Positions 1,666-63,944 of a stretch of 64,000 nt of DNA are shown here, piece by piece. The DNA lies in IMG/VR virus record IMGVR_UViG_3300009545_000018, positions 372,001 through 436,000 of that record; one strand, written 5' to 3'. The notes under the pieces are model-generated. The model searched no databases and was not told the DNA's origin. It was given only the letters and a program-made list of their open reading frames with translations. Each line of letters starts with the position of its first letter. The stretch's first letter is position 1. The translations under genes and the position numbers were made by a program.

Positions 1666-1868
1666 CTTTATCAGAAGCTGCTTCTGCATTAAATATACAA
1701 TATAAAAATTTATTTACATCTAATTATCATAATACTATGATGGTTGGTATTGATGAATTTAATATAATAGTTTATCTGAATAATAAAAATAATATAAATG
1801 AACTACCGACCGAGTTTGAAGGCTATCCAGTGGATATAAAAGTTATCGGTGAAATTGTTCCAGCGTAA
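1662..1868 (+). CDS. Small hypothetical protein
   Basis: ATGA overlap with the rmlB stop suggests start 1662; ends LPTEFEGYPVDIKVIGEIVPA. Confidence 0.55.
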   Translation: MTLSEAASALNIQYKNLFTSNYHNTMMVGIDEFNIIVYLNNKNNINELPTEFEGYPVDIKVIGEIVPA

Positions 1869-3226
1869 TGGAGAAAAGTATGTCAGCTACATCAATAACA
1901 GAAGAAGACAAAAAAGAAGAAATTGTAGATAATATTTCAAATGAAGAAGCTGTTGATATGAACAAGTTAGCAGCTCTCAAAGCAAAAAATCAAGCCAAAC
2001 AAGAGGAAAAGAAAATGGCATCCAAAATTGTTGCAAAAAAAGAAAGAAGTTTAGTATTAGGTGTTTTAGGCTCTGGTCAAGCAGGATCTAGAATTGCTGA
2101 ATCATTTTATAAATTAGGTTATGACGCTGTAGTTGTTAATACTGCTGCACAAGATTTAAAATTTATCGAGGTTCCAGATTCTTGTAAATTATTATTAGAG
2201 TACGGAGTAGGCGGGGCTTCTAAAGAATTATCAATTGGTGCTGCCGCTGCGGAAGCTCATAAAGAAGAAATTGCTGAGTTAGTCCACAATAAGTTAGGTC
2301 ATACTCAAGTTAATTTATTAACTTTATCATTAGGTGGTGGTTCTGGTGCCGGCTCTTGTGAAACATTAGTTGAATTAATGGCAGCTACTGGTAAACCATT
2401 AGTTGTTATGACCGTTTTACCAATGGATACAGAAGATGCTCAAACAAAAGCTAACGCATTAGAAACATTATCTAAATTAACAGAGTATGCTAAGAGCAAG
2501 AAGATTGCCAATTTACTAGTAGTTGATAATGCCAAGATTGAAGCTATTTATCACAATGTAAGTCAAATGGAATTCTTTGGTGTGGCAAATAAAGCCATCG
2601 TAGAAACTATTGAAGCATTTAACGTATTTTCTTCAATGCCATCATCTACTAAAGCTTTAGATCCAATGGAATTTACTAAAATATTTATTGATGGTGAAGG
2701 CTTAAGCGTTTATGGAGAGTTAACAGTTGAAAATTATTCTGAAGATACTGCTATAGCTGAAGCTGTAGTAAATAATTTAGATGGTAACTTATTATCTGGC
2801 GGGTTTGATTTAAAGCAATCAAAATATGTTGGTTTCATTGTTGCCGCTAATAAAGAAGTTTGGTCTAAGATTCCTGCAGCTAGTGTTAATTATGCTTCAG
2901 CCATGATTAACGATTTGTGTGGAAGTCCTAAGGGTGTATTTAAGGGAATGTATGTTACTGAATCTACAGATGATGTAGTTAAAGTATATTCTATGTTTAG
3001 TGGACTTGGATTACCATCTAGTAGAGTTGATCAGTTAAAGAAAGATACTAAAGAGTTACAATCTAAGGTGAAAGAAAAAGATGAACAACGTAATCTTAGT
3101 TTAAATTTAGATACTGGTACAAATGAGACAGTATCTGCCGCACAAAAGATTAAGGCACAAATTGCAGCTAAGAATTCAACTTTTGGAAAATTTGTGGGTG
3201 GTACAGTTGATCGTAGAAATAAATAA
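1868..3226 (+). CDS. Tubulin/FtsZ-family GTPase (PhuZ/TubZ-like)
   Basis: GSGQAGSRIA loop, VVNTAAQDL, LGGGSGAG tubulin signature variant, LVVDN, LDPMEF; extended N- and C-terminal tails. Confidence 0.88.
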   Translation: MEKSMSATSITEEDKKEEIVDNISNEEAVDMNKLAALKAKNQAKQEEKKMASKIVAKKERSLVLGVLGSGQAGSRIAESFYKLGYDAVVVNTAAQDLKFIEVPDSCKLLLEYGVGGASKELSIGAAAAEAHKEEIAELVHNKLGHTQVNLLTLSLGGGSGAGSCETLVELMAATGKPLVVMTVLPMDTEDAQTKANALETLSKLTEYAKSKKIANLLVVDNAKIEAIYHNVSQMEFFGVANKAIVETIEAFNVFSSMPSSTKALDPMEFTKIFIDGEGLSVYGELTVENYSEDTAIAEAVVNNLDGNLLSGGFDLKQSKYVGFIVAANKEVWSKIPAASVNYASAMINDLCGSPKGVFKGMYVTESTDDVVKVYSMFSGLGLPSSRVDQLKKDTKELQSKVKEKDEQRNLSLNLDTGTNETVSAAQKIKAQIAAKNSTFGKFVGGTVDRRNK

Positions 3227-10572: not shown

Positions 10573-11202
10573 ATGATAACAGAACAAGACGCACAAGATT
10601 TGATGATTAGGTTAATTGAGCTTAGAGAACAAGCAAAAAAAAGCGAAGATGTAAAGATAAAAAGTGCTCTAAAAAAGCATGAAGCACAATGTATTGAAAA
10701 ATTTAAATATTTAGTAACCATGAAAACTGGTCGATACAAAATTTTTAGTAATTATGAAGACTTAAATCAAGAGGGATTTGAAGCTTTAATTAAAGCAATG
10801 AATAATTATAATCCAAATAAAGGTTCTTTCTTTTGGTGGGCACATAAATATATTGATACTCGTATTTCACGTAGTGCTAATTTACATACTACTATAAGAT
10901 ATCCACTTAAGGTAGCTAAAGAATCAACACCTCATAAAGAATCTATAATGCCAGTTTTGATTGAAGAAAGATATTGTCCTGACAAAGAATTAGAGTTGGC
11001 TCAAACCTATACTGCCATGGAAAAGGCTTTTGATAAATTATCAAACGAACAAAAAGATATTGTTAATCTTGCTTTTGGTTTTGATAGCGATAAACCAATG
11101 TCTATCAATAAAATTTGTAAGAAATTAAATATTTCAAGATTAAATTGTATTAAAACAATTAATGGTGCTTTATCTATTATGAAGGAGAGCATCAAAGTAT
11201 AA
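10573..11202 (+). CDS. Phage sigma70-family sigma factor
   Basis: Region 2 (EDLNQEGFEALIKAMNNYNPNKG-FFWWA) and region 4 HTH (LSNEQKDIV...MSINKICKKLNIS). Confidence 0.85.
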   Translation: MITEQDAQDLMIRLIELREQAKKSEDVKIKSALKKHEAQCIEKFKYLVTMKTGRYKIFSNYEDLNQEGFEALIKAMNNYNPNKGSFFWWAHKYIDTRISRSANLHTTIRYPLKVAKESTPHKESIMPVLIEERYCPDKELELAQTYTAMEKAFDKLSNEQKDIVNLAFGFDSDKPMSINKICKKLNISRLNCIKTINGALSIMKESIKV

Positions 11203-42753: not shown

Positions 42754-42978
42754 TTAATTGCCTTTTATTCTATAAACAATACGACCCATAGTCATATCAT
42801 ACTCAGAAACCTCAATTTTAACAGAGTCTCCTACTAAAATTCTAACTGAATTTTGTCTTATTTTACCAGATAAGGTACAAAGCACAATATTATTATCTCC
42901 AACATCTACTTTGAATCTGCCTTTATTTGAATCAACAACAACACCTTCAAGCTCAAGACGTTCTCTTTCAATATTCAT
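42754..42978 (-). CDS. infA: Translation initiation factor IF-1
   Basis: LEGVVV...FKV...LCTLSGKIRQNSVRILVGDSVKIEVSEYD...GRIVYR. Confidence 0.93.
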   Translation of the reverse strand: MNIERERLELEGVVVDSNKGRFKVDVGDNNIVLCTLSGKIRQNSVRILVGDSVKIEVSEYDMTMGRIVYRIKGN

Positions 42979-43598
42979 ATTACTTCCTTATATGTTTGTT
43001 TTTTAATAATTCTTCTAATAACTTCCGTCCGTTTAATCTTAAATTTCATAGCCAATTCTTTATAAGATAATCCTAGATTAAAGTCAATTCTTATTTGTCT
43101 TATTTCATCATTTGATAATAGCGCCCGTGGATTATCCTCTCCTTGATGTGATAATTTTGCGATATTAGACATTTTAATTTTCGCTTCATCTGAGTGATTT
43201 TTTCCAAACATTACATTTCCGCTGCCTGATCTCTGTTCTGACATTTTTATTTTTGCTTCAGGTGTATGTGTTTTTCCATACATTGGATTTTTATTTCCAC
43301 TTAATGCTCCTCTACCACCAAAATCTTCATTATATCCTTCAATTTTCGAACGGAAAAATTCTATCCAAAACATTTCAGCTTCAATCATATCATTTTCTTC
43401 AGAAAATGACTCTATTACCATAAATTTGAAATTTTCAATACCATACTTATTTATAGCGGCATGAATACTACTATAATTTTTAGATTTTGTATTTTTAACA
43501 ATTGACCTATGATCACTCCATCGTCTGGCGGAGTCATTAGTTCTTCCTACATATAATTTATAATTAATTAAATTTTGAATGATATATACATAAAACAT
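42975..43598 (-). mobile_element. Free-standing GIY-YIG homing endonuclease with NUMOD3 repeats
   Basis: VYIIQNLINYKLYVGRT, RRWSDH, GYN, NPMYGKTHTPEAKIKMS x2. Confidence 0.88.
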
Positions 43599-46658: not shown

Positions 46659-46898
46659 TTAAAATAGTTTCCTAATGAATTTAATTAAATTACTACCTGC
46701 TGAGTAAACAGCTAATTTTAATTCTTTTTTTCCAGCTAATTTGTGTTTAACTCCTACTGGGGAGTGATGTTTATATAATTCAGCTGCTTGCTCTGGTGTT
46801 TCTGCTAAAACTCTATAAGTAACAGTGGCTGGTAGCATACATTCAACTTTTACATCAAAATAGAACTTTTGGGGAGGTTGTAATTTATCTTGTTTCAT
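46659..46898 (-). CDS. Hypothetical protein
   Basis: 79-aa ORF. Confidence 0.6.
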   Translation of the reverse strand: MKQDKLQPPQKFYFDVKVECMLPATVTYRVLAETPEQAAELYKHHSPVGVKHKLAGKKELKLAVYSAGSNLIKFIRKLF

Positions 46899-48460
46899 CT
46901 ATTATTTATATCATTATACTCATACTTTAAATAATGATTATAATAAGTCTCGGGTGTACCCGTTAATTCGTAAAATCTCTTCATAAATAGATCTTTTGCT
47001 TGTTGAGGAGGCAATGGATCTATTATAAATGGGTAGGCTTCTTTTTTTATTTCCCAATCTGAACGAAGAGTTTTAAATAAATCTCTAGCTTCAGTGTATA
47101 ACATTTTTGTATCGGCAAATTTAACGCTTTGTGGTTCATTTTGTGATAAACCAAATTTCTTATAAATAGTTTCTTGTAAAGAGTTTTCATATTCTTTAAA
47201 TATATTAAACTTACCAGATCTTTTTAATGGGCTCGGTAAATCTATTAAATATGCTTCAGAAGCATCATGCAACAAACCGTGTAATGCATGTGCACTATCA
47301 CATAAATGACTGACTAAAACAGAATGTTGAGCTACAGAGTTATGTGCACCGTAACCTTCAGCAAAATATGTTTTAGAGCTTGTTTCTAAAGCTACTACTT
47401 CTTGAACACCAAGATCTTCTATTTTTAGAATCTCGGACATATTAATGCTATCAAATTCTTTACGCCAATCACCATTTTTTAAACTATTTTTAAAGTTATT
47501 TATTAATCTTTTACTTTTAATTTTTCCAAGAGATTGTAATTTAGTAAACCATTTACCAGTTAAAGTAATATTTTTACAATTTTTATTTGTTTTATATTGT
47601 GAATTGGGCACTTTATTATTATCTAATAATTTTTTTATTTTGTTTAAAATTTCTCCCTCATTTTGAGCAATTGAAATAACAAAACCTTTCTTTTTTGCTG
47701 AAATAGTTGCTTCACCATCAAATATTCCTTCTAAATAAGCTAACTCATAATTTAGGGGATCTTCTTTCCACACATCAATAAATTTAAGCATAAATCTTTG
47801 TTTGCCTGACTTTACTGCTTTTACAATTCCTTCGGTTGTTTCCCAAAATTGATTTCTAGATTTTTTAGAACAAATAAGCCAAGGATGTTCAGCAGATGAT
47901 TTTAAAATAGTTCCATCTGATAAATGAAGGGCAAATACATGTCTTTTTATTATGCCTGTATGTAGAACATATGAGTTATCTAATTTTCTACGACTCTCCC
48001 TATTATTTTTTTTTAAACCATCAACTCCAGTATTTTCATCAAATCCAATTAATTGTTCAAAATTTTTAAGTTCGCCCGCCGGCTTCCAAGTTAAATCTGC
48101 CGTTAAAACTTTTGTATCTGGAGTAACACAATAAAATTTTTTAATATGACCAGAAAATCGACATGTCATGGCAAGAGCATGAGCTATATCTTGAATTACA
48201 ATTGTATCAGGATTTGGATTCAAAGGTGTAAATCTTAAACCCGTATAAGTTTGAATCCAAGGCTCAGATGGATCATAGTTGAAAGGATCTTGTTCTTTAT
48301 TTTTTAAATCTGTATTATCATTATAAAACTGTTTAATTACATCTAATTCTTCTGGTTGAACCAACGGAGAATTTAAATCTTGTGATGCTGTTGATTCCCA
48401 TTTTATTTTAACTTCGTCAAATTGGGATGGATTATTAATTATATCTTGTTTATCTTTCAT
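46895..48460 (-). CDS. HD-domain phosphohydrolase (YfbR-like) interrupted by an intein
   Basis: DIAHALA..CRFSGH..FY|intein|SVAQHS...LLHDASEAY..D; start MKDKQ 1 nt after the dut stop. Confidence 0.85.
   Translation of the reverse strand: MKDKQDIINNPSQFDEVKIKWESTASQDLNSPLVQPEELDVIKQFYNDNTDLKNKEQDPFNYDPSEPWIQTYTGLRFTPLNPNPDTIVIQDIAHALAMTCRFSGHIKKFYCVTPDTKVLTADLTWKPAGELKNFEQLIGFDENTGVDGLKKNNRESRRKLDNSYVLHTGIIKRHVFALHLSDGTILKSSAEHPWLICSKKSRNQFWETTEGIVKAVKSGKQRFMLKFIDVWKEDPLNYELAYLEGIFDGEATISAKKKGFVISIAQNEGEILNKIKKLLDNNKVPNSQYKTNKNCKNITLTGKWFTKLQSLGKIKSKRLINNFKNSLKNGDWRKEFDSINMSEILKIEDLGVQEVVALETSSKTYFAEGYGAHNSVAQHSVLVSHLCDSAHALHGLLHDASEAYLIDLPSPLKRSGKFNIFKEYENSLQETIYKKFGLSQNEPQSVKFADTKMLYTEARDLFKTLRSDWEIKKEAYPFIIDPLPPQQAKDLFMKRFYELTGTPETYYNHYLKYEYNDINNR
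47339..48130 (-). mobile_element. Intein (264 aa) with LAGLIDADG-type endonuclease motif
   Basis: Starts CVTPDTKVLTAD, block B SAEHPW, LAYLEGIFDGEA, ends TYFAEGYGAHN, +1 Ser. Confidence 0.9.
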
Positions 48461-48461
48461 T

Positions 48462-48974
48462 TTACTTTCCTGTACTACCAAATCCACTAGCTCCACGACT
48501 AGCATTCCTATTTTTACACAAGACATCATATTCTTCATTTGATATTTCTTCAACAATCATTTCTTTTCTTTTGACAGGAATAATTTGCCCCAAGGCATCC
48601 CCAAAATTAATTTCTAACTTTTTACTATTACTAAATGAAGTTTCATTATTAGTACAAATAATAGCTTCAGGTATATATTGGCAAGCTAATAATAATTCTC
48701 CTTCATAGGTTTCATCGATTGTACCATATAAACAGTGCAATCGTTTTTTACCAAATGTTGAAGATCTTGGCTTTAATTCAAACCACCAACCCTCTGGGCA
48801 AAAAGTTCTAAAACCTAATGGAATAATAGCTTTCTCAAAAGGAGAAAGCGATAAACTTGTGGCTGCTCTTACATCCCATCCTGTGGCATGTGGCTCTGCT
48901 TTTGTTGGTAAAAACTCTTTATTATTTTTTAGATCTTCTCTTAATGCAAACTTAAAATTTGGAATTTCTGACAT
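48462..48974 (-). CDS. dut: Trimeric dUTPase
   Basis: ATGWDV, PRSS, GTIDETYEGE, LGQII, RGASGFGSTG. Confidence 0.92.
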   Translation of the reverse strand: MSEIPNFKFALREDLKNNKEFLPTKAEPHATGWDVRAATSLSLSPFEKAIIPLGFRTFCPEGWWFELKPRSSTFGKKRLHCLYGTIDETYEGELLLACQYIPEAIICTNNETSFSNSKKLEINFGDALGQIIPVKRKEMIVEEISNEEYDVLCKNRNASRGASGFGSTGK

Positions 48975-50984: not shown

Positions 50985-51632
50985 ATGAATTCAAAGAAAC
51001 TTCTAAGATTTGCTATAGCATTCTATTCAATAGCAATGAAAGAAAAACTACCAGAAAATTCTAAAGATACTTCTAAAATACTTAAAAACTTAGAGGCATT
51101 AGAATCATTTAATGCTCGCAAAAGATATGCCAACGCCAATTTAAAAAATTTATCTTCCGGCTCATCCAGGATTGTGTACTTGACACCTGATAAAACTATC
51201 CTTAAGTTAGCAAAAAATGAAAAAGGATTGGCTCAAAATGAAGCAGAGTCTAATCCTAAAATGAAATCTAAGTATATTAATAAAGTACTTAAACGAGCTA
51301 AAAATGATGCTTGGATAGAGGTTCCATATTTAGATAAGATTACTGAAAGAGATTTTAAAAAGATGACAACATTATCTTTTAATGATTTTAGTAATTGTAT
51401 TAGGTATGGTTTAAAATCAGTATCAGGAAATACTGATAAAGATAAACCTGACTGTTTTGATAAGGTGTCCAAACATCCTTTGTATGTAGAAATGTTAGAA
51501 ATAGGTAAAAAATTTAAATTAATGCCCGGTGATTTATCCAAAATATCATCTTGGGGATCTAAAGATAATAAACCTATTCTTATAGATGCTGGATTGACAC
51601 AAAAAGTATATGAAGAATTTTATGAATCATGA
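50985..51632 (+). CDS. Protein-kinase-like fold protein
   Basis: SSGSSRIVY loop, ILKLAK, AQNEAE, GDL...SWG, LIDAG in kinase order. Confidence 0.55.
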   Translation: MNSKKLLRFAIAFYSIAMKEKLPENSKDTSKILKNLEALESFNARKRYANANLKNLSSGSSRIVYLTPDKTILKLAKNEKGLAQNEAESNPKMKSKYINKVLKRAKNDAWIEVPYLDKITERDFKKMTTLSFNDFSNCIRYGLKSVSGNTDKDKPDCFDKVSKHPLYVEMLEIGKKFKLMPGDLSKISSWGSKDNKPILIDAGLTQKVYEEFYES

Positions 51633-61361: not shown

Positions 61362-61396
61362 TGGCATACTCTCTGCATTATTCAATTAACATACCA
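61362..61396. promoter_or_regulatory. Head-to-head sigma54-type element pair 1 (right half degenerate)
   Basis: TGGCATACTCTCTGCA ... reverse TGGTATGTTAATTGA. Confidence 0.55.
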
Positions 61397-61470
61397 ATTA
61401 TTCTTTTATAAGTCTTATTAATTAATTATACTTACATTACAATCATTTAATAAACATTATTAATCATTTA

Positions 61471-61504
61471 TGGCATCTTTCTTGCTTTCGCTGTTATTTT
61501 GCCT
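61471..61504. promoter_or_regulatory. Head-to-head sigma54-type pair 2
   Basis: TGGCATCTTTCTTGCT; reverse AGGCAAAATAACAGC; 4-nt centre. Confidence 0.55.
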
Positions 61505-61537
61505 CACTGAACAGCTTTTCAGCCCTTTTAGTAGTCT

Positions 61538-61572
61538 TGGTACAGTAACTGCAAGATGCAAAGCCTATACCA
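61538..61572. promoter_or_regulatory. Head-to-head sigma54-type pair 3
   Basis: GG-N10-GC-N5-GC-N10-CC; reverse TGGTATAGGCTTTGCA. Confidence 0.65.
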
Positions 61573-61667
61573 TGCCATAGCAGTCATTCCAGTTACACTG
61601 CACTTACCCATCTTTTAACGGTTAGTACCTGATTAATGTAGCGGGTAGCTGAGATAAGGAGATTACT

Positions 61668-61859
61668 ATGGCACAATTCAAGATTTTGTCTCAAGTCAAT
61701 GGTTCTTGGTTGGAGCAGGGGAAAGATCTCGGCGGTACTACTGTTATGAATCAAGCTGCTCAATTGGAAAAGCAGGGATTGAATGTTCGAGTTTTCCGAA
61801 CTGATATTCCCAAGTTCATTTATGAAACGGGAGCAGGATACCACGGAATCTGGTACTGA
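61668..61859 (+). CDS. Small hypothetical (putative early) protein
   Basis: AAGGAG RBS; followed by a terminator. Confidence 0.7.
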   Translation: MAQFKILSQVNGSWLEQGKDLGGTTVMNQAAQLEKQGLNVRVFRTDIPKFIYETGAGYHGIWY

Positions 61860-61865
61860 AAGAAT

Positions 61866-61893
61866 AAAGGAGCCTAAGGCTCCTTTTCTTTTT
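61866..61893 (+). terminator. Intrinsic terminator
   Basis: AAAGGAGCC-taa-GGCTCCTTT plus T-run. Confidence 0.8.
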
Positions 61894-61900
61894 ATCTTTG

Positions 61901-61935
61901 TGGTATAGGATTTGCTTATTGCAATTAATATACCA
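61901..61935. promoter_or_regulatory. Head-to-head sigma54-type pair 4
   Basis: TGGTATAGGATTTGCT-TAT-TGCAATTAATATACCA. Confidence 0.72.
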
Positions 61936-62007
61936 AGACTTTTTAGATAAAAGAGCTCTACCCATCCTATAACGGAATCAAAGCAGCTATTGTAAGGTAG
62001 GTATCAT

Positions 62008-62379
62008 ATGGAATTCACCTATGAGAATGATGAAGGGGAAGACATTACAGTCACCTTCCCTAGTGTTAAGGTAGTTTGCCCAAGGTGTAAAGGGCACGGA
62101 ACCCACCTTCACAATGATATTGGTAGCTATGCTTACAGCGTAGAAGAATTCCAAGATTCCTTTGATGAAGAAGAACAGGCAGAGTATTTTCGCCATGGTG
62201 GAAGATATGACGTTCTCTGCGAACGCTGTCACGGTAAAAACGTGGTGGATGAGATTGACGAAGAGAAGTGTCAGCAGGATCCGGCTTTGACAGAAGCCTG
62301 GCAAGCTTTTTGTCAGAAAGAAAAGGATGATGCTGATTATGAAAGACTCTGTGAATCAGAGCGGCGCTTTGGTTGCTGA
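62008..62379 (+). CDS. Hypothetical protein with DnaJ-type CxxCxGxG Zn motifs
   Basis: CPRCKGHG, CERCHGKN. Confidence 0.72.
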   Translation: MEFTYENDEGEDITVTFPSVKVVCPRCKGHGTHLHNDIGSYAYSVEEFQDSFDEEEQAEYFRHGGRYDVLCERCHGKNVVDEIDEEKCQQDPALTEAWQAFCQKEKDDADYERLCESERRFGC

Positions 62380-62416
62380 TTGAGATCCCATCCTATAACG
62401 GATTACTGCTAATAGT

Positions 62417-62629
62417 ATGACAACCCTGCAGAATCTCAAGAAGCGTGACTTGTCTTTTGCTTACCAGATTGCAGTGGCAGACTGGAAAAAACTTTCTGCT
62501 ATGTGTTCTGGGCAGTCAGCTGACGATCTGGCTAATGGCTTTCATGGTAAGTCATTGGCTGGAGTGCTGTTTGATTCGGAATTGGCAGTGGATCAGATTG
62601 CAGCTAAGCTGGATCGGTTGAATCCTTAA
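62417..62629 (+). CDS. Small hypothetical protein
   Basis: ATG 14 nt after a box. Confidence 0.65.
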   Translation: MTTLQNLKKRDLSFAYQIAVADWKKLSAMCSGQSADDLANGFHGKSLAGVLFDSELAVDQIAAKLDRLNP

Positions 62630-62635
62630 GGGATT

Positions 62636-62665
62636 GAAAGGGAGGTTTACCTCCCTTTCTTTTTA
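62636..62665 (+). terminator. Intrinsic terminator
   Basis: GAAAGGGAGG-ttta-CCTCCCTTTC plus T-run. Confidence 0.85.
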
Positions 62666-62673
62666 ATTGATGC

Positions 62674-62708
62674 TGGTATGCCGTTTGCATATTGCAATGT
62701 TCGAGCCA
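62674..62708. promoter_or_regulatory. Head-to-head sigma54-type pair 5
   Basis: TGGTATGCCGTTTGCA-TAT-TGCAATGTTCGAGCCA. Confidence 0.72.
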
Positions 62709-62871
62709 ACCGTCATAAAGTTTGCTTTAAACTTGTTCCCATCTGATAACGGATAGATCCTAATAGTATAGTTTTTCTGAGGGTTCTGACTAAAAGTAAA
62801 ACCCTCCCCCTTTACGTTGCAAACAGTAACTGTAGTAGGCAATAAGCTTCCAGTTATATTGTAACAAAGTT

Positions 62872-62902
62872 TGGCGGTATCTTAAAACCGCCACATTTTT
62901 TA
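62872..62902 (+). terminator. Intrinsic terminator
   Basis: TGGCGGT-atcttaaa-ACCGCCA plus T-run. Confidence 0.7.
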
Positions 62903-62934
62903 ATCCCATCATTTAACGGAAAGGTCTAAGTAAT

Positions 62935-63129
62935 ATGAATACTCTTTTTAAGTTGGTTGTTGTGATGTTGGCATTGTTTGCCGTGACTTTCTTGATTCAA
63001 ACCTATGCCAATTCTTGGTTTCATCAAGTGGCATTCACGGCTCCTATCATTGGAACCATGAGCTATGCAGCTTGTACCATTGTGGCAGTAGGTTGTGTGT
63101 TGCTGTCAAAGCTGCATTGGGGCAAGTAA
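62935..63129 (+). CDS. Small membrane protein (2 TM)
   Basis: Hydrophobic; ATG 14 nt after a box. Confidence 0.65.
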   Translation: MNTLFKLVVVMLALFAVTFLIQTYANSWFHQVAFTAPIIGTMSYAACTIVAVGCVLLSKLHWGK

Positions 63130-63227
63130 TGTTAGGTTTCGTGGTGTTTTGCCTGGTAGGTTTTTTTACTGGGCATTGGGTAGTGGGTGGTATTATTGGA
63201 ATTGTAGTATACGCCCTAAATAAGTAA
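63129..63227 (+). CDS. 32-aa hydrophobic peptide
   Basis: TAATG overlap; MLGFVVFCLVGFFTGHWVVGGIIGIVVYALNK. Confidence 0.55.
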   Translation: MLGFVVFCLVGFFTGHWVVGGIIGIVVYALNK

Positions 63228-63259
63228 CTCCCATCAATAAACGGTTGAATGTTATTGAT

Positions 63260-63436
63260 ATGACATATCATCCCAGTTACCGAGCAGTAGATTCTGTTGG
63301 TACTGAATGTGAAACTTTTGAACATGAGTATCAAGCGGTAGACTATTGGACTGGTGCTCCTACTGGAATTGATATTCAATATTGGAATGGTTCTGAATGG
63401 GAAGAATATAATCCTAGGACTTTCACTAAAGATTAA
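63260..63436 (+). CDS. Small acidic hypothetical protein
   Basis: ATG 14 nt after a box; stop 2 nt before the next box. Confidence 0.65.
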   Translation: MTYHPSYRAVDSVGTECETFEHEYQAVDYWTGAPTGIDIQYWNGSEWEEYNPRTFTKD

Positions 63437-63472
63437 TTCCCATCAATTAACGGATTGTACCTAGTTATTGAG

Positions 63473-63652
63473 ATGCAAAACCTAAAAGACCGATTGGAAA
63501 AGTTAGCAGATTCTTTTAAGGGTACTACCAATTCTTTTGGTAGGTTTACCGTCACCAATGTAGGTTGCGGGATTCTGAGAGTTGATGGTGAAGGTGTGCA
63601 GTATACTCCCGATGTAATATTGGGTTTTCTCAATCGACACGGCATTAAGTAA
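63473..63652 (+). CDS. Small hypothetical protein
   Basis: MQNLKDRLEKLAD...; stop 2 nt before the next box. Confidence 0.62.
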   Translation: MQNLKDRLEKLADSFKGTTNSFGRFTVTNVGCGILRVDGEGVQYTPDVILGFLNRHGIK

Positions 63653-63697
63653 TTCCCATCAATAAACGGATTAGATCTATTAGAAAGGATAAAAAAG

Positions 63698-63802
63698 ATG
63701 AAAGCATTCAATTGTTATATTGTCAAGCGCAAGGGCAAAGTCATCAAGGGTGAGAGTCGCAAGCTGCGCAATGCAGCCAAGCGACAACGTCAAGGTCGCT
63801 AA
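63698..63802 (+). CDS. 34-aa basic peptide resembling ribosomal protein bL36
   Basis: MKAFNCYIVKRKGKVIKGESRKLRNAAKRQRQGR; AAAGGA RBS; terminator follows. Confidence 0.55.
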   Translation: MKAFNCYIVKRKGKVIKGESRKLRNAAKRQRQGR

Positions 63803-63805
63803 ACC

Positions 63806-63841
63806 AAAAGAATGAGAGCTTAATTGTTCTCATTCTTTTTT
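63806..63841 (+). terminator. Intrinsic, possibly bidirectional terminator
   Basis: AAAAGAATGAGAGC-ttaatt-GTTCTCATTCTTTT. Confidence 0.85.
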
Positions 63842-63850
63842 AATTGGTCT

Positions 63851-63885
63851 TGGCATATGCTTTGCAACTTGCAATAAGCTTGCCA
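63851..63885. promoter_or_regulatory. Head-to-head sigma54-type pair 6
   Basis: TGGCATATGCTTTGCA-ACT-TGCAATAAGCTTGCCA. Confidence 0.78.
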
Positions 63886-63944
63886 GGCGTTATATTTTTA
63901 TATCCCATCTATTAACGGAAAGACATACTAAGTGGAGGCTGGTA

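Follow-up and report, generated by a model that had tools for sequence, protein, structure and literature searches.

Facing sigma-54-type -24/-12 sites head operons of small genes in a large uncultured phage

The locus

The window analyzed here is a stretch of 64,000 nucleotides (64 kb) from an uncultured phage genome of roughly 448 kb (IMG/VR record IMGVR_UViG_3300009545_000018). At 61362-63885 of the window, small genes on the + strand are arranged in operons. Each operon starts with a 35-bp element made of two facing copies of the sequence read by bacterial sigma-54 RNA polymerase (the -24/-12 sequence, GG-N10-GC). The features are the following.

61362..61396, no strand: pair 1; the forward half TGGCATACTCTCTGCA is strong (17.7 bits), the reverse half is degenerate (TTGAA in place of TTGCA)
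61471..61505, + strand: site 2, in effect a single forward half-site (61471-61486, 16.9 bits); the mirrored half keeps only GG-N10-GC
61538..61572, no strand: pair 3, an exact match to the pattern (14.7 and 14.4 bits), the last of three forward-facing sites ahead of the first box and gene of the array
61866..61900, + strand: intrinsic terminator (9-bp stem and T-run) ending the gene 61668-61859; it also scores as a terminator on the minus strand
61901..61935, no strand: pair 4, an exact match on both strands (16.5 and 16.2 bits), 14 nt after the terminator hairpin 61866-61886
62636..62673, + strand: intrinsic terminator (10-bp stem and T-run) ending the operon 62008-62629
62674..62708, no strand: pair 5 (15.8 and 11.7 bits), 14 nt after the terminator hairpin 62636-62659
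63811..63842, + strand: hairpin and T-run ending the operon that finishes at 63802
63851..63885, no strand: pair 6 (17.7 and 12.5 bits), 16 nt after the hairpin 63811-63834 and its T-run
61607..63918, + strand: nine per-gene boxes T-CCCATC-NNN-TAACGG, starting at 61607, 61961, 62387, 62738, 62905, 63230, 63439, 63655 and 63904; the start codon usually lies about 15 nt after AACGG
61668..63802, + strand: small ORFs of 34-123 aa served, in our reading, by the pairs and boxes (61668-61859, 62008-62379, 62417-62629, 62935-63129, 63260-63436, 63473-63652, 63698-63802)

The box is the second motif of the same gene class. The nine boxes (CCCATC-N4-AACGG) are all on the + strand, against 0.16 expected, and a box follows each pair within 19-35 nt. 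Six of the small ORFs were searched in PHROGs and gave no match. Only 62008-62379 was searched in Pfam, where it gave a sub-threshold zinc-ribbon hit, and this protein has no relative in the phage collection that we searched.

The initial annotation described six head-to-head pairs here, and this observation is confirmed. The pattern TGGYAY-N5-YTGCW-N3-WGCAA-N5-RTRCCA matches at 61362, 61538, 61901, 62674 and 63851 with 0-2 mismatches on both strands. These are 10 strand-matches against 0.01 expected from 100 dinucleotide shuffles, which rules out chance; the sequences were also read directly. The copy at 61471 has a strong forward half (TGGCATCTTTCTTGCT), but its reverse half scores below 8 bits. 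There are hence five strong mirrored pairs plus one site with only a good forward half. The reverse half of 61362 has GA in place of GC, so the annotation's statement that 11 of 12 half-sites keep GG-N10-GC holds. Its statement that five of six pairs have a 5-nt center could not be reproduced as worded: all six copies, 61471 included, have 5 nt between TTGC and GCAA.

Whether such sites are confined to this region had been set as a test beforehand. We scanned both strands of the 64 kb with a position weight matrix (PWM) built from the half-sites of other phages. Of the 12 hits scoring 11.5 bits or more, 11 lie in 61362-63885, and the exception is one single site at 51117-51132 on the minus strand. 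All six forward halves and four of six reverse halves score 11.7-17.7 bits. Nevertheless, the pairs are not limited to the six copies of the initial annotation. The series continues for 12 kb to the contig end, and the array runs to the contig end and beyond.

Distribution among phages and bacteria

The same mirrored design occurs in hundreds of other virus contigs. An exact scan of IMG/VR returned at least 120 loci, and we estimate the total at about 170. In 596 Gb of bacterial genomes there were only 16 loci, about the chance number and mostly chance hits inside genes. The annotation's claim that the arrangement is unusual is therefore strongly supported: it is virtually absent from these bacterial genomes and common in virus contigs. 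Literature searches found no description of it, and it appears to be undescribed.

In this phage and five related large phages (GC 42-56%) the order is terminator, pair, CCCAT-type box, genes, with one pair per operon. The pairs lie 15-60 nt upstream of the first box and gene. Terminator hairpins end 14-17 nt before the pairs at 61901, 62674 and 63851, and the hairpin-to-element gap is 14-17 nt in eight copies. The close link to a terminator is, however, specific to this lineage and not general. It holds for 10 of 130 pairs against 17 of 650 random positions, and most of those are from this lineage. The per-gene box also differs between relatives (CCCATC..TAACGG, CTCCCATTCAC, CCCATCATGAAACA, CCCATCGCCAAACGG), while the pair stays the same. 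In other lineages the pairs lie upstream of ordinary sigma-70-like promoters, or in arrays of 3-4 with 41-47 bp periods in regulatory hubs. An analysis of gene orientation around the pairs with a crude ORF caller was too noisy to use.

By DNA, no close relatives were found among cultured phages, and two further array queries gave nothing useful. Phage T5 (first 50 kb) has no half-site. The huge-phage records LR756502 and LR745208 have no pairs in the 42 kb and 29 kb examined.

The half-site is the unit

Calling the halves sigma-54-type elements, as the initial annotation did, is well supported. In 252 half-sites from unrelated virus contigs of 27-66% GC, the positions left free in the search follow the RpoN consensus (YTGGCAYR-N4-TTGCW): T before TGG, C at position 4, a purine at position 7 and T at position 12. 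The sites are A/T-rich just past the GC and lie in intergenic regions upstream of genes.

The gap between the two -12 elements varies: 3 bp (10 cases), 4 (47), 5 (22), 6 (10) and 7 (25). The spacers of the two arms are not complementary and agree no more than expected by chance (mean 1.08 of 4 positions). About 394 of 905 strict half-sites (about 44%) in these phages have no partner. So the 16-bp half-site is the unit, rather than a hairpin or a rigid dimer site. Single half-sites in pair-bearing phages show no orientation bias towards gene starts (39 against 40), although this test is crude. An excess of CA/TG arm combinations may reflect related arrays.

In this phage's lineage the two halves are not equivalent. 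Oriented by gene direction, the forward arm scores 15.95 bits and the reverse arm 12.72, and the forward arm wins in 26 of 34 pairs (Wilcoxon p=0.0014). In the window all six forward halves beat their partners. In the other lineages the asymmetry is not significant (n=24, p=0.11).

The element is not an intrinsic terminator or a stable hairpin. Folding as single strands gives only weak structures (-0.7 to -7.5 kcal/mol; z-scores mostly above -1.3), the true terminators are separate hairpins upstream, and Rfam finds nothing in the window. Nor does it look like a sigma-70-type promoter. TTGCAA could serve as a -35, but no -10 element is conserved at the required, fixed distance downstream in the ten copies compared. 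Promoter-like hits in the array region are no more frequent than in shuffles (37 against 35.6). A Bacteroidota-type -7 element (TAnnTTTG), judged by eye, was not seen consistently downstream.

Searches for an activator

Sigma-54 promoters depend on a bEBP AAA+ activator, usually bound at an upstream enhancer, and our searches found neither. There is no GAFTGA or RpoN-box signature in 3,602 ORFs. A bEBP AAA+ profile finds nothing in 12,124 ORF segments from the window and about 2 Mb of pair-bearing loci, and no activator or sigma-54 gene was found there, nor a bEBP in the 12 kb beyond the window. These searches left out about 360 kb of this genome and hence do not show absence. No shared enhancer-like motif lies upstream of the pairs beyond what is seen in controls. 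The phage does encode a sigma-70-family factor at 10573-11202, which fits dependence on host core polymerase. This protein and the sigma-like protein of another pair-bearing lineage are not detectably related to each other.

Phages do use sigma-54. IMG/VR holds 162 stretches encoding bEBP relatives, and short forms without a DNA-binding domain are each followed within about 25-60 nt by one forward sigma-54 site. The sites next to these phage bEBP genes are single and not mirrored: 28 single sites and 0 pairs in 80 loci. Among the contigs listed, none carries both a bEBP gene and pairs.

Discussion

Our tentative explanation is that the elements are docking sites for the host's sigma-54 RNA polymerase holoenzyme, each at the head of a transcription unit of small genes. 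In this view the gene-facing half (GG at about -24, GC at about -12) is the operon's promoter. Transcription would start roughly 12 nt past the GC, inside the right arm, and run through the CCCATC box into the genes. The opposite half would be a second, weaker docking site that overlaps the first, so that only one polymerase could sit there at a time. It would either compete with the productive site as a built-in brake or fire a short transcript into the adjacent upstream terminator. Like all sigma-54 promoters, the site would hold polymerase in a closed complex until an ATPase activator opens it. That activator would be encoded elsewhere in the 448-kb genome or supplied by the host, and would act from solution.

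What our analysis shows is the motif, its statistics, its position in the operon, its restriction to viruses, its match to the RpoN consensus and the forward/reverse asymmetry. That sigma-54 (presumably of a host that has rpoN) is the reader, that transcription starts at these sites and what the mirrored half does are all inferred.

The match to the consensus at unconstrained positions, the variable gap and the many single half-sites fit a monomeric reader such as sigma-54. A pair that stays the same while the box diverges is expected if its reader is a conserved host protein. The phage's dependence on host core polymerase and the use of sigma-54 by other phages also speak for this reading. 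The sites also lie upstream of, and are oriented towards, the genes, and no rival promoter is visible for these operons, unless the per-gene box is one. On the other hand, no activator or enhancer was found, the sites beside phage bEBP genes are single, and single half-sites lack an orientation bias. In other lineages the pairs lie upstream of sigma-70-like promoters or in arrays, without a significant asymmetry, and this too counts against it. A promoter model also gives no reason why the mirrored half is conserved.

The interpretation in the initial annotation is partly supported. It offered two readings, early promoters driven by host sigma-54 or decoys that trap holoenzyme, and these cannot be separated by sequence alone. 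The operon-head position and the better-conserved gene-facing half favor a promoter. That the genes are early is an inference from gene size only.

It is not excluded, although we consider it unlikely, that the sites are non-productive traps or insulators. They would bind holoenzyme (or free sigma-54) in stable closed complexes that never fire. The phage could use them to separate neighboring transcription units, to occlude nearby promoters or, once its genome has replicated, to soak up sigma-54 and shut down host sigma-54-dependent responses. A mirrored site would capture polymerase from either direction. The symmetry of the element, the unbiased single half-sites, the arrays of 3-4 pairs and the lack of an activator or enhancer speak for this view. 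In several lineages, sequences resembling other host-protein sites also lie close to the pairs: Fur-like 7-1-7 boxes within about 40 nt in some 12 loci, SlmA-like GTGAGTACTCAC, and DnaA boxes in Vibrio phage D419. However, in this phage there is exactly one pair per operon, in the promoter position, and the gene-facing half is better conserved. A handful of sites cannot titrate a cell's sigma-54 before the genome replicates. From the geometry we would also infer that a roadblock 14-17 nt past the hairpin stalls an incoming polymerase before it finishes the terminator.

About as unlikely is an operator for a DNA-binding protein encoded by the phage, a possibility the initial annotation also raised as a dimeric mimic of RpoN recognition. 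Such a protein would recognize T(G/T)GCA-type blocks spaced one helical turn apart and would switch the operons on or off, and its site would only happen to resemble two facing RpoN sites. The motif is palindromic and restricted to viruses, and the four blocks TGGCA, TTGCA, TGCAA and TGCCA are related pentamers. In one lineage, extra CTGCCA-N3-TGGCAG palindromes lie next to the pairs, and in several lineages the pairs lie upstream of sigma-70-like promoters, like operators. Yet no protein family is shared across the lineages in the sampled flanks, where the largest cluster covers 22 of 117 loci. The site is the same in phages of 27-66% GC, while phage-specific motifs such as the box diverge. 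A gap that varies by 4 bp and the large share of single half-sites do not fit the fixed, obligatory pairing of a rigid dimer, and reproducing the fine detail of the RpoN consensus would be a striking coincidence. A structure-dependent signal is very unlikely. The central TTGCW-N3-WGCAA can form a small hairpin (5-bp stem, 3-nt loop) of the kind used as a promoter by the virion RNA polymerase of phage N4. Alternatively, the element could be a site for recombination or replication (a cassette junction or an iteron). The modules of terminator plus element flank small, variable ORFs, like the shuffling cassettes of T4-type phages, and arrays of 3-4 palindromes resemble origin iterons. Against this, folding is weak, the loop or gap varies from 3 to 7 nt, and the conserved outer arms, 11 bp away, play no part in such a hairpin. 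In this phage the elements are spread one per operon over more than 25 kb, unlike an origin.

A wider reading is possible, though less likely than not. Several hundred uncultured virulent phages, including genomes of 200-480 kb, and one cultured family of T5-like Vibrio phages (the D419 family) would carry a cis-element found only in viruses. In it, facing sigma-54 promoter sequences whose -12 elements nearly touch would capture host sigma-54 RNA polymerase at the heads of early-type operons and in regulatory hubs. The mirrored geometry would be a new way of using sigma-54. It might make a self-limiting or activator-gated promoter, possibly one that needs no classical enhancer. Or it might be a landing pad that holds host polymerase, or diverts it from host sigma-54 stress responses, during infection.

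Sigma-54 is the one bacterial sigma factor that holds polymerase silent until an ATPase opens the complex, and its role in phage infection is almost unexplored. If the elements are read by sigma-54, a large and diverse set of virulent phages wires part of its program to this machinery, through an arrangement that bacteria themselves do not use. This would raise the questions of how, and by what, a mirrored site is opened, whether it is a gated early promoter, an insulator or a sponge, and whether it links phage development to host stress or nitrogen signals. It would also give a simple sequence marker for phage regulatory regions in metagenomes and a compact, possibly orthogonal, control element for synthetic biology. 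The D419 family provides a cultured system, and the element is short enough to be tested in E. coli K-12.

Bacterial sigma-54-dependent promoters share the half-site, with its invariant GG-N10-GC, and the intergenic position. The mirrored half, only 3-7 bp away between the -12 elements, has no counterpart in that family. In E. coli, sigma-54 holoenzyme is known to occupy many sites without transcribing (PMC4591121) and can sit so at consensus sites, which is the precedent for a trap or insulator. Those are single chromosomal sites, often inside genes, and not mirrored intergenic pairs specific to viruses. In the promoter-early/stem-loop (PeSL) cassettes of T4-type phages, a terminator stem-loop is followed at once by the promoter of the next small, variable early gene, and the module repeats many times in a region of small ORFs. 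The order of hairpin and element here, with its gap of 14-17 nt, matches this architecture, but PeSL promoters are sigma-70 early promoters, whereas here the promoter position is taken by a mirrored sigma-54-type element and a separate per-gene box is also present.

For Htm, a bEBP-like protein from a T4-like coliphage, it has been proposed that a virulent phage engages sigma-54 polymerase through an AAA+ protein that lacks a DNA-binding domain (preprint 10.64898/2026.10.06.757011). This proposal is a hypothesis; Htm lacks the GAFTGA loop, and no cis-element in the phage genome is described. The phage modules in which a short bEBP without a DNA-binding domain is followed by one sigma-54 site, for example in a 65.6-kb marine phage contig, show that phages do plug into host sigma-54. 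Those sites face forwards, with the activator gene next to them, and there are no mirrored partners in the 80 loci and none in 20.7 kb around the activator gene. Their half-site sequence is the same as the one described here (TGGCACGAAGGTTGCT) and lies directly upstream of the next gene.

Mirrored pairs and their context

Our direct reading of the region and a search with the pattern TGGYAY-N5-YTGCW-N3-WGCAA-N5-RTRCCA, taken from the initial annotation, show that mirrored sites recur at one end of the window. The pattern matches at 61362, 61538, 61901, 62674 and 63851 with 0–2 mismatches on both strands, where dinucleotide shuffles predict 0.01 matches. The initial annotation had counted six head-to-head pairs. 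Its observation holds, although the sixth copy, at 61471, has a strong forward half and only a degenerate partner, and the reverse half of 61362 has GA where GC is expected. A strict half-site pattern occurs nowhere else in the 64 kb. The initial annotation had also asked for a genome-wide RpoN-type score as a test. When we scanned both strands of the window with a position weight matrix built from half-sites of unrelated phages, the outcome was clearly positive: 11 of the 12 hits scoring 11.5 bits or more fall in 61362–63885. The exception is one single site far from the array. The features of the window that are relevant here are:

1868–3226, 42975–43598 and 46895–48556: a TubZ/PhuZ-type tubulin, and two homing-endonuclease-like genes (GIY-YIG with NUMOD3, and LAGLIDADG)
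10573–11202: a sigma-70-family factor of 209 aa (Pfam Sigma70_r2; PHROG sigma factor)
51117–51132, minus strand: the single high-scoring sigma-54-type half-site (GTTGGCATATCTTTTGCGAG, 17.2 bits), inside the + strand ORF 50985–51632
61362–63885: the mirrored sites
61607–63918, + strand: per-gene boxes, T-CCCATC-NNN-TAACGG, continuing in locus L030 (see below)
62738–62893: a box not followed by an ORF, then about 120 nt of structured sequence ending in the terminator 62872–62893

The window is part of a large uncultured phage that also encodes ribonucleotide reductase, DnaB, PhoH and collagen-like fibre proteins. The phage has no close DNA relative among deposited phages. Its relatives are the IMG/VR records 3300028558_000791, 3300010938_000950, 3300028735_000003, 3300049215_000223 and 3300048502_000185. 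The window covers positions 372,001–436,000 of a 447,763-bp metagenome contig (JGI 3300009545, Ga0105237_10000004). Locus L030, which overlaps the window and runs to the contig end, holds four more pairs at window-equivalent positions 65012, 66786, 68661 and 71693. Another pair lies in locus L008, about 8.1 kb from the contig start. The array of pairs and boxes runs to the last base of the contig, and it probably spans the junction of a circular or terminally redundant genome. Many pair-bearing loci in other contigs also lie at contig ends.

Every pair from 61901 onwards, including the one in L008, follows a hairpin, usually with a T-run, and the distance from the hairpin end to TGG is a constant 14–17 nt. 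A CCCATC-N4-AACGG box then follows 15–60 nt later. This box occurs as 43 exact copies (plus near-matches), always on the + strand and only in this array (L030 570–14491; window-equivalent 61607–75528), where it precedes most of the small ORFs in 14.7 kb. The start codon usually lies about 15 nt after AACGG. The picture is therefore one pair per operon and one box per gene. The box may be a promoter for the phage's own sigma factor, or an RNA processing or translation signal. The sigma-70-family factor, through which the phage redirects host core RNA polymerase, is a candidate reader of the box. The box at 62738, with its structured sequence and terminator, may mark a small RNA gene, and a second box (L030 3917) is followed directly by a terminator, but a search with Rfam finds nothing. 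No sigma-70-like −10 element is conserved downstream of the pairs, and no common motif lies upstream of them.

Distribution of the element

An exact scan of IMG/VR for the 35-bp pattern found at least 120 loci. A much stricter version of the pattern found 7 loci in all, 5 of which were among those 120, which suggests about 170 loci for the canonical pattern. The same pattern in 596 Gb of bacterial and archaeal genomes gave 16 loci, where we estimate about 9 matches by chance from the information content of the pattern. Most of the 16 lie inside genes and have no second site. The convincing ones, with several sites each, are small MAG contigs (loci L123, L129 and L133). Hence, the mirrored arrangement belongs to viruses and is not a feature of bacterial chromosomes or of integrated prophages.

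The viral loci span 27–66% GC and several unrelated phage groups. Positions that our search left free reproduce the sigma-54 consensus: T before TGG in 55% of half-sites, C at position 4 in 92%, a purine at position 7 in 95% (G 59%, A 36%) and T at position 12 in 93%.

The half-site as the functional unit

In a scan that allowed any gap between the inner TTGC and GCAA, the gaps cluster at 3, 4, 5, 6 and 7 bp with 10, 47, 22, 10 and 25 cases, respectively, and larger gaps are only scattered. The four variable bases in each arm agree between the arms at chance level (mean 1.08 of 4), and single-strand folding is weak. Of 905 distinct strict half-sites in about 2 Mb of these loci, 401 have a perfect facing partner, 106 have a near-perfect one and about 394 have none. 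By our estimate only a handful would be expected by chance. The functional unit is therefore the 16-bp half-site, read by something that does not need a fixed dimer geometry. The half-sites have a strong tendency to sit head to head with their −12 elements almost touching. Among 199 pairs from all loci, the two arms rarely carry the same dinucleotide after TGGCA: CA/TG combinations number 60 against 30 expected, and TG/TG 2 against 18. This could be true asymmetry between the arms, or an effect of related arrays being counted several times.

Evidence for direction

Five other large phage contigs (loci L026, L066, L003, L015 and L091; GC 42–56%) share the scheme of terminator, pair, box and genes. 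Their per-gene box differs (CTCCCATTCAC, CCCATCATGAAACA, CCCATCGCCAAACGG) but has the same CCCAT core, while the pair is unchanged. This is what one expects if the box is read by a fast-evolving phage factor and the pair by a conserved host factor.

We oriented all 34 pairs of this lineage by gene direction. The gene-facing arm scores 15.95 bits and the opposite arm 12.72, and the gene-facing arm wins in 26 of 34 pairs (Wilcoxon p=0.0014). In the window all six forward halves beat their partners, and at the start of the array three forward-facing sites (61362, 61471 and 61538) stand in tandem. In another lineage (locus L170), five half-sites point towards one operon and three of them have partners. 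A similar test in lineages where a sigma-70-like promoter marks the direction gave only a weak trend (14 against 10, p=0.11), and single half-sites show no orientation bias in a crude test (39 against 40).

The missing activator

Sigma-54 promoters need an AAA+ activator. We found none, either by signature or by a profile built from four E. coli activators, in the window, the 12 kb beyond it and all pair-bearing loci, a search that leaves out about 360 kb of the present phage. The same profile did find 162 activator-encoding stretches in IMG/VR. Many of them encode short proteins without a DNA-binding domain. Each is followed within about 25–60 nt by one forward sigma-54 site, with 28 single sites and no pairs in 80 loci. 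One example, on a 65.6-kb marine phage contig, is a 235-aa protein with a Sigma54_activat domain, no DNA-binding domain and the loop sequence GSFTGA (L324 3004–3711; L326 10001–10708). A perfect single sigma-54 site follows immediately (L324 3734–3749; L326 10731), about 40 nt before the next gene. We found no paper describing such modules. These loci show that phages do exploit sigma-54, but also that mirrored pairs are a separate phenomenon. None of the contigs examined carries both.

Interpretation

We tentatively read the pairs as docking sites for host sigma-54 polymerase. In this view, the forward half would act in this phage as the activator-dependent promoter of each operon, and the mirrored half would be a weaker competing site, or one that fires into the upstream terminator. 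The motif, its statistics, its place at operon heads, its restriction to viruses and the asymmetry of its arms are direct results of the analysis. That sigma-54 binds the sites, that transcription starts there and what the mirrored half does are inferred from sequence alone. The main rivals are a non-firing trap or insulator and an operator for a phage protein. We consider each less likely than docking sites, but neither is excluded. The initial annotation had proposed that the phage drives early genes from host sigma-54 or that the sites are decoys for the holoenzyme, with a phage protein mimicking RpoN recognition as an alternative. Its interpretation is supported in part. Our literature searches found no description of paired sigma-54-type sites in phages. 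The nearest item is a 2026 preprint proposing, as a hypothesis, that a phage AAA+ protein acts on sigma-54 polymerase.

Other contexts of the pairs

Outside this lineage the pairs occur in different surroundings, all of which point to early regulatory regions, where the sites may fire, block or merely bind. In one group the pairs lie about 35–60 nt upstream of clear sigma-70-like promoters. In another group, arrays of pairs fill the long non-coding region between the terminase side and the first small genes, with a Fur-like 7-1-7 box next to them. Fur-family-like 7-1-7 palindromes (AATGAGAATGATTCTCATT, GCGAATGATTATCATTATC) lie within about 40 nt of the pairs in roughly a dozen loci from a few lineages (L035 4099, L012 539, L088 7040, L076 7600, L108 4550, L067 26, L116 107 and others). 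SlmA-like GTGAGTACTCAC occurs in loci L037 and L118.

A cultured family of T5-like Vibrio phages (D419 and 285 similar records, 286 in all) has one 33-bp mirrored pair (L137 6002–6034; Vibrio phage D419, OZ195672.1 103218–103251) beside two DnaA boxes (6069 and 6121), plus three single half-sites, in its pre-early region. The pair lies in what corresponds to the pre-early divergent promoter region, and in the record it lies under an annotated 46-aa hypothetical ORF. Phage T5 itself has no half-site in its first 50 kb. Finally, in one lineage (L100 4527–4575; also L025, L047, L090 and L119) two CTGCCA-N3-TGGCAG mini-palindromes lie directly beside each pair. They share the TGGCA block and could be hairpins or further protein sites.
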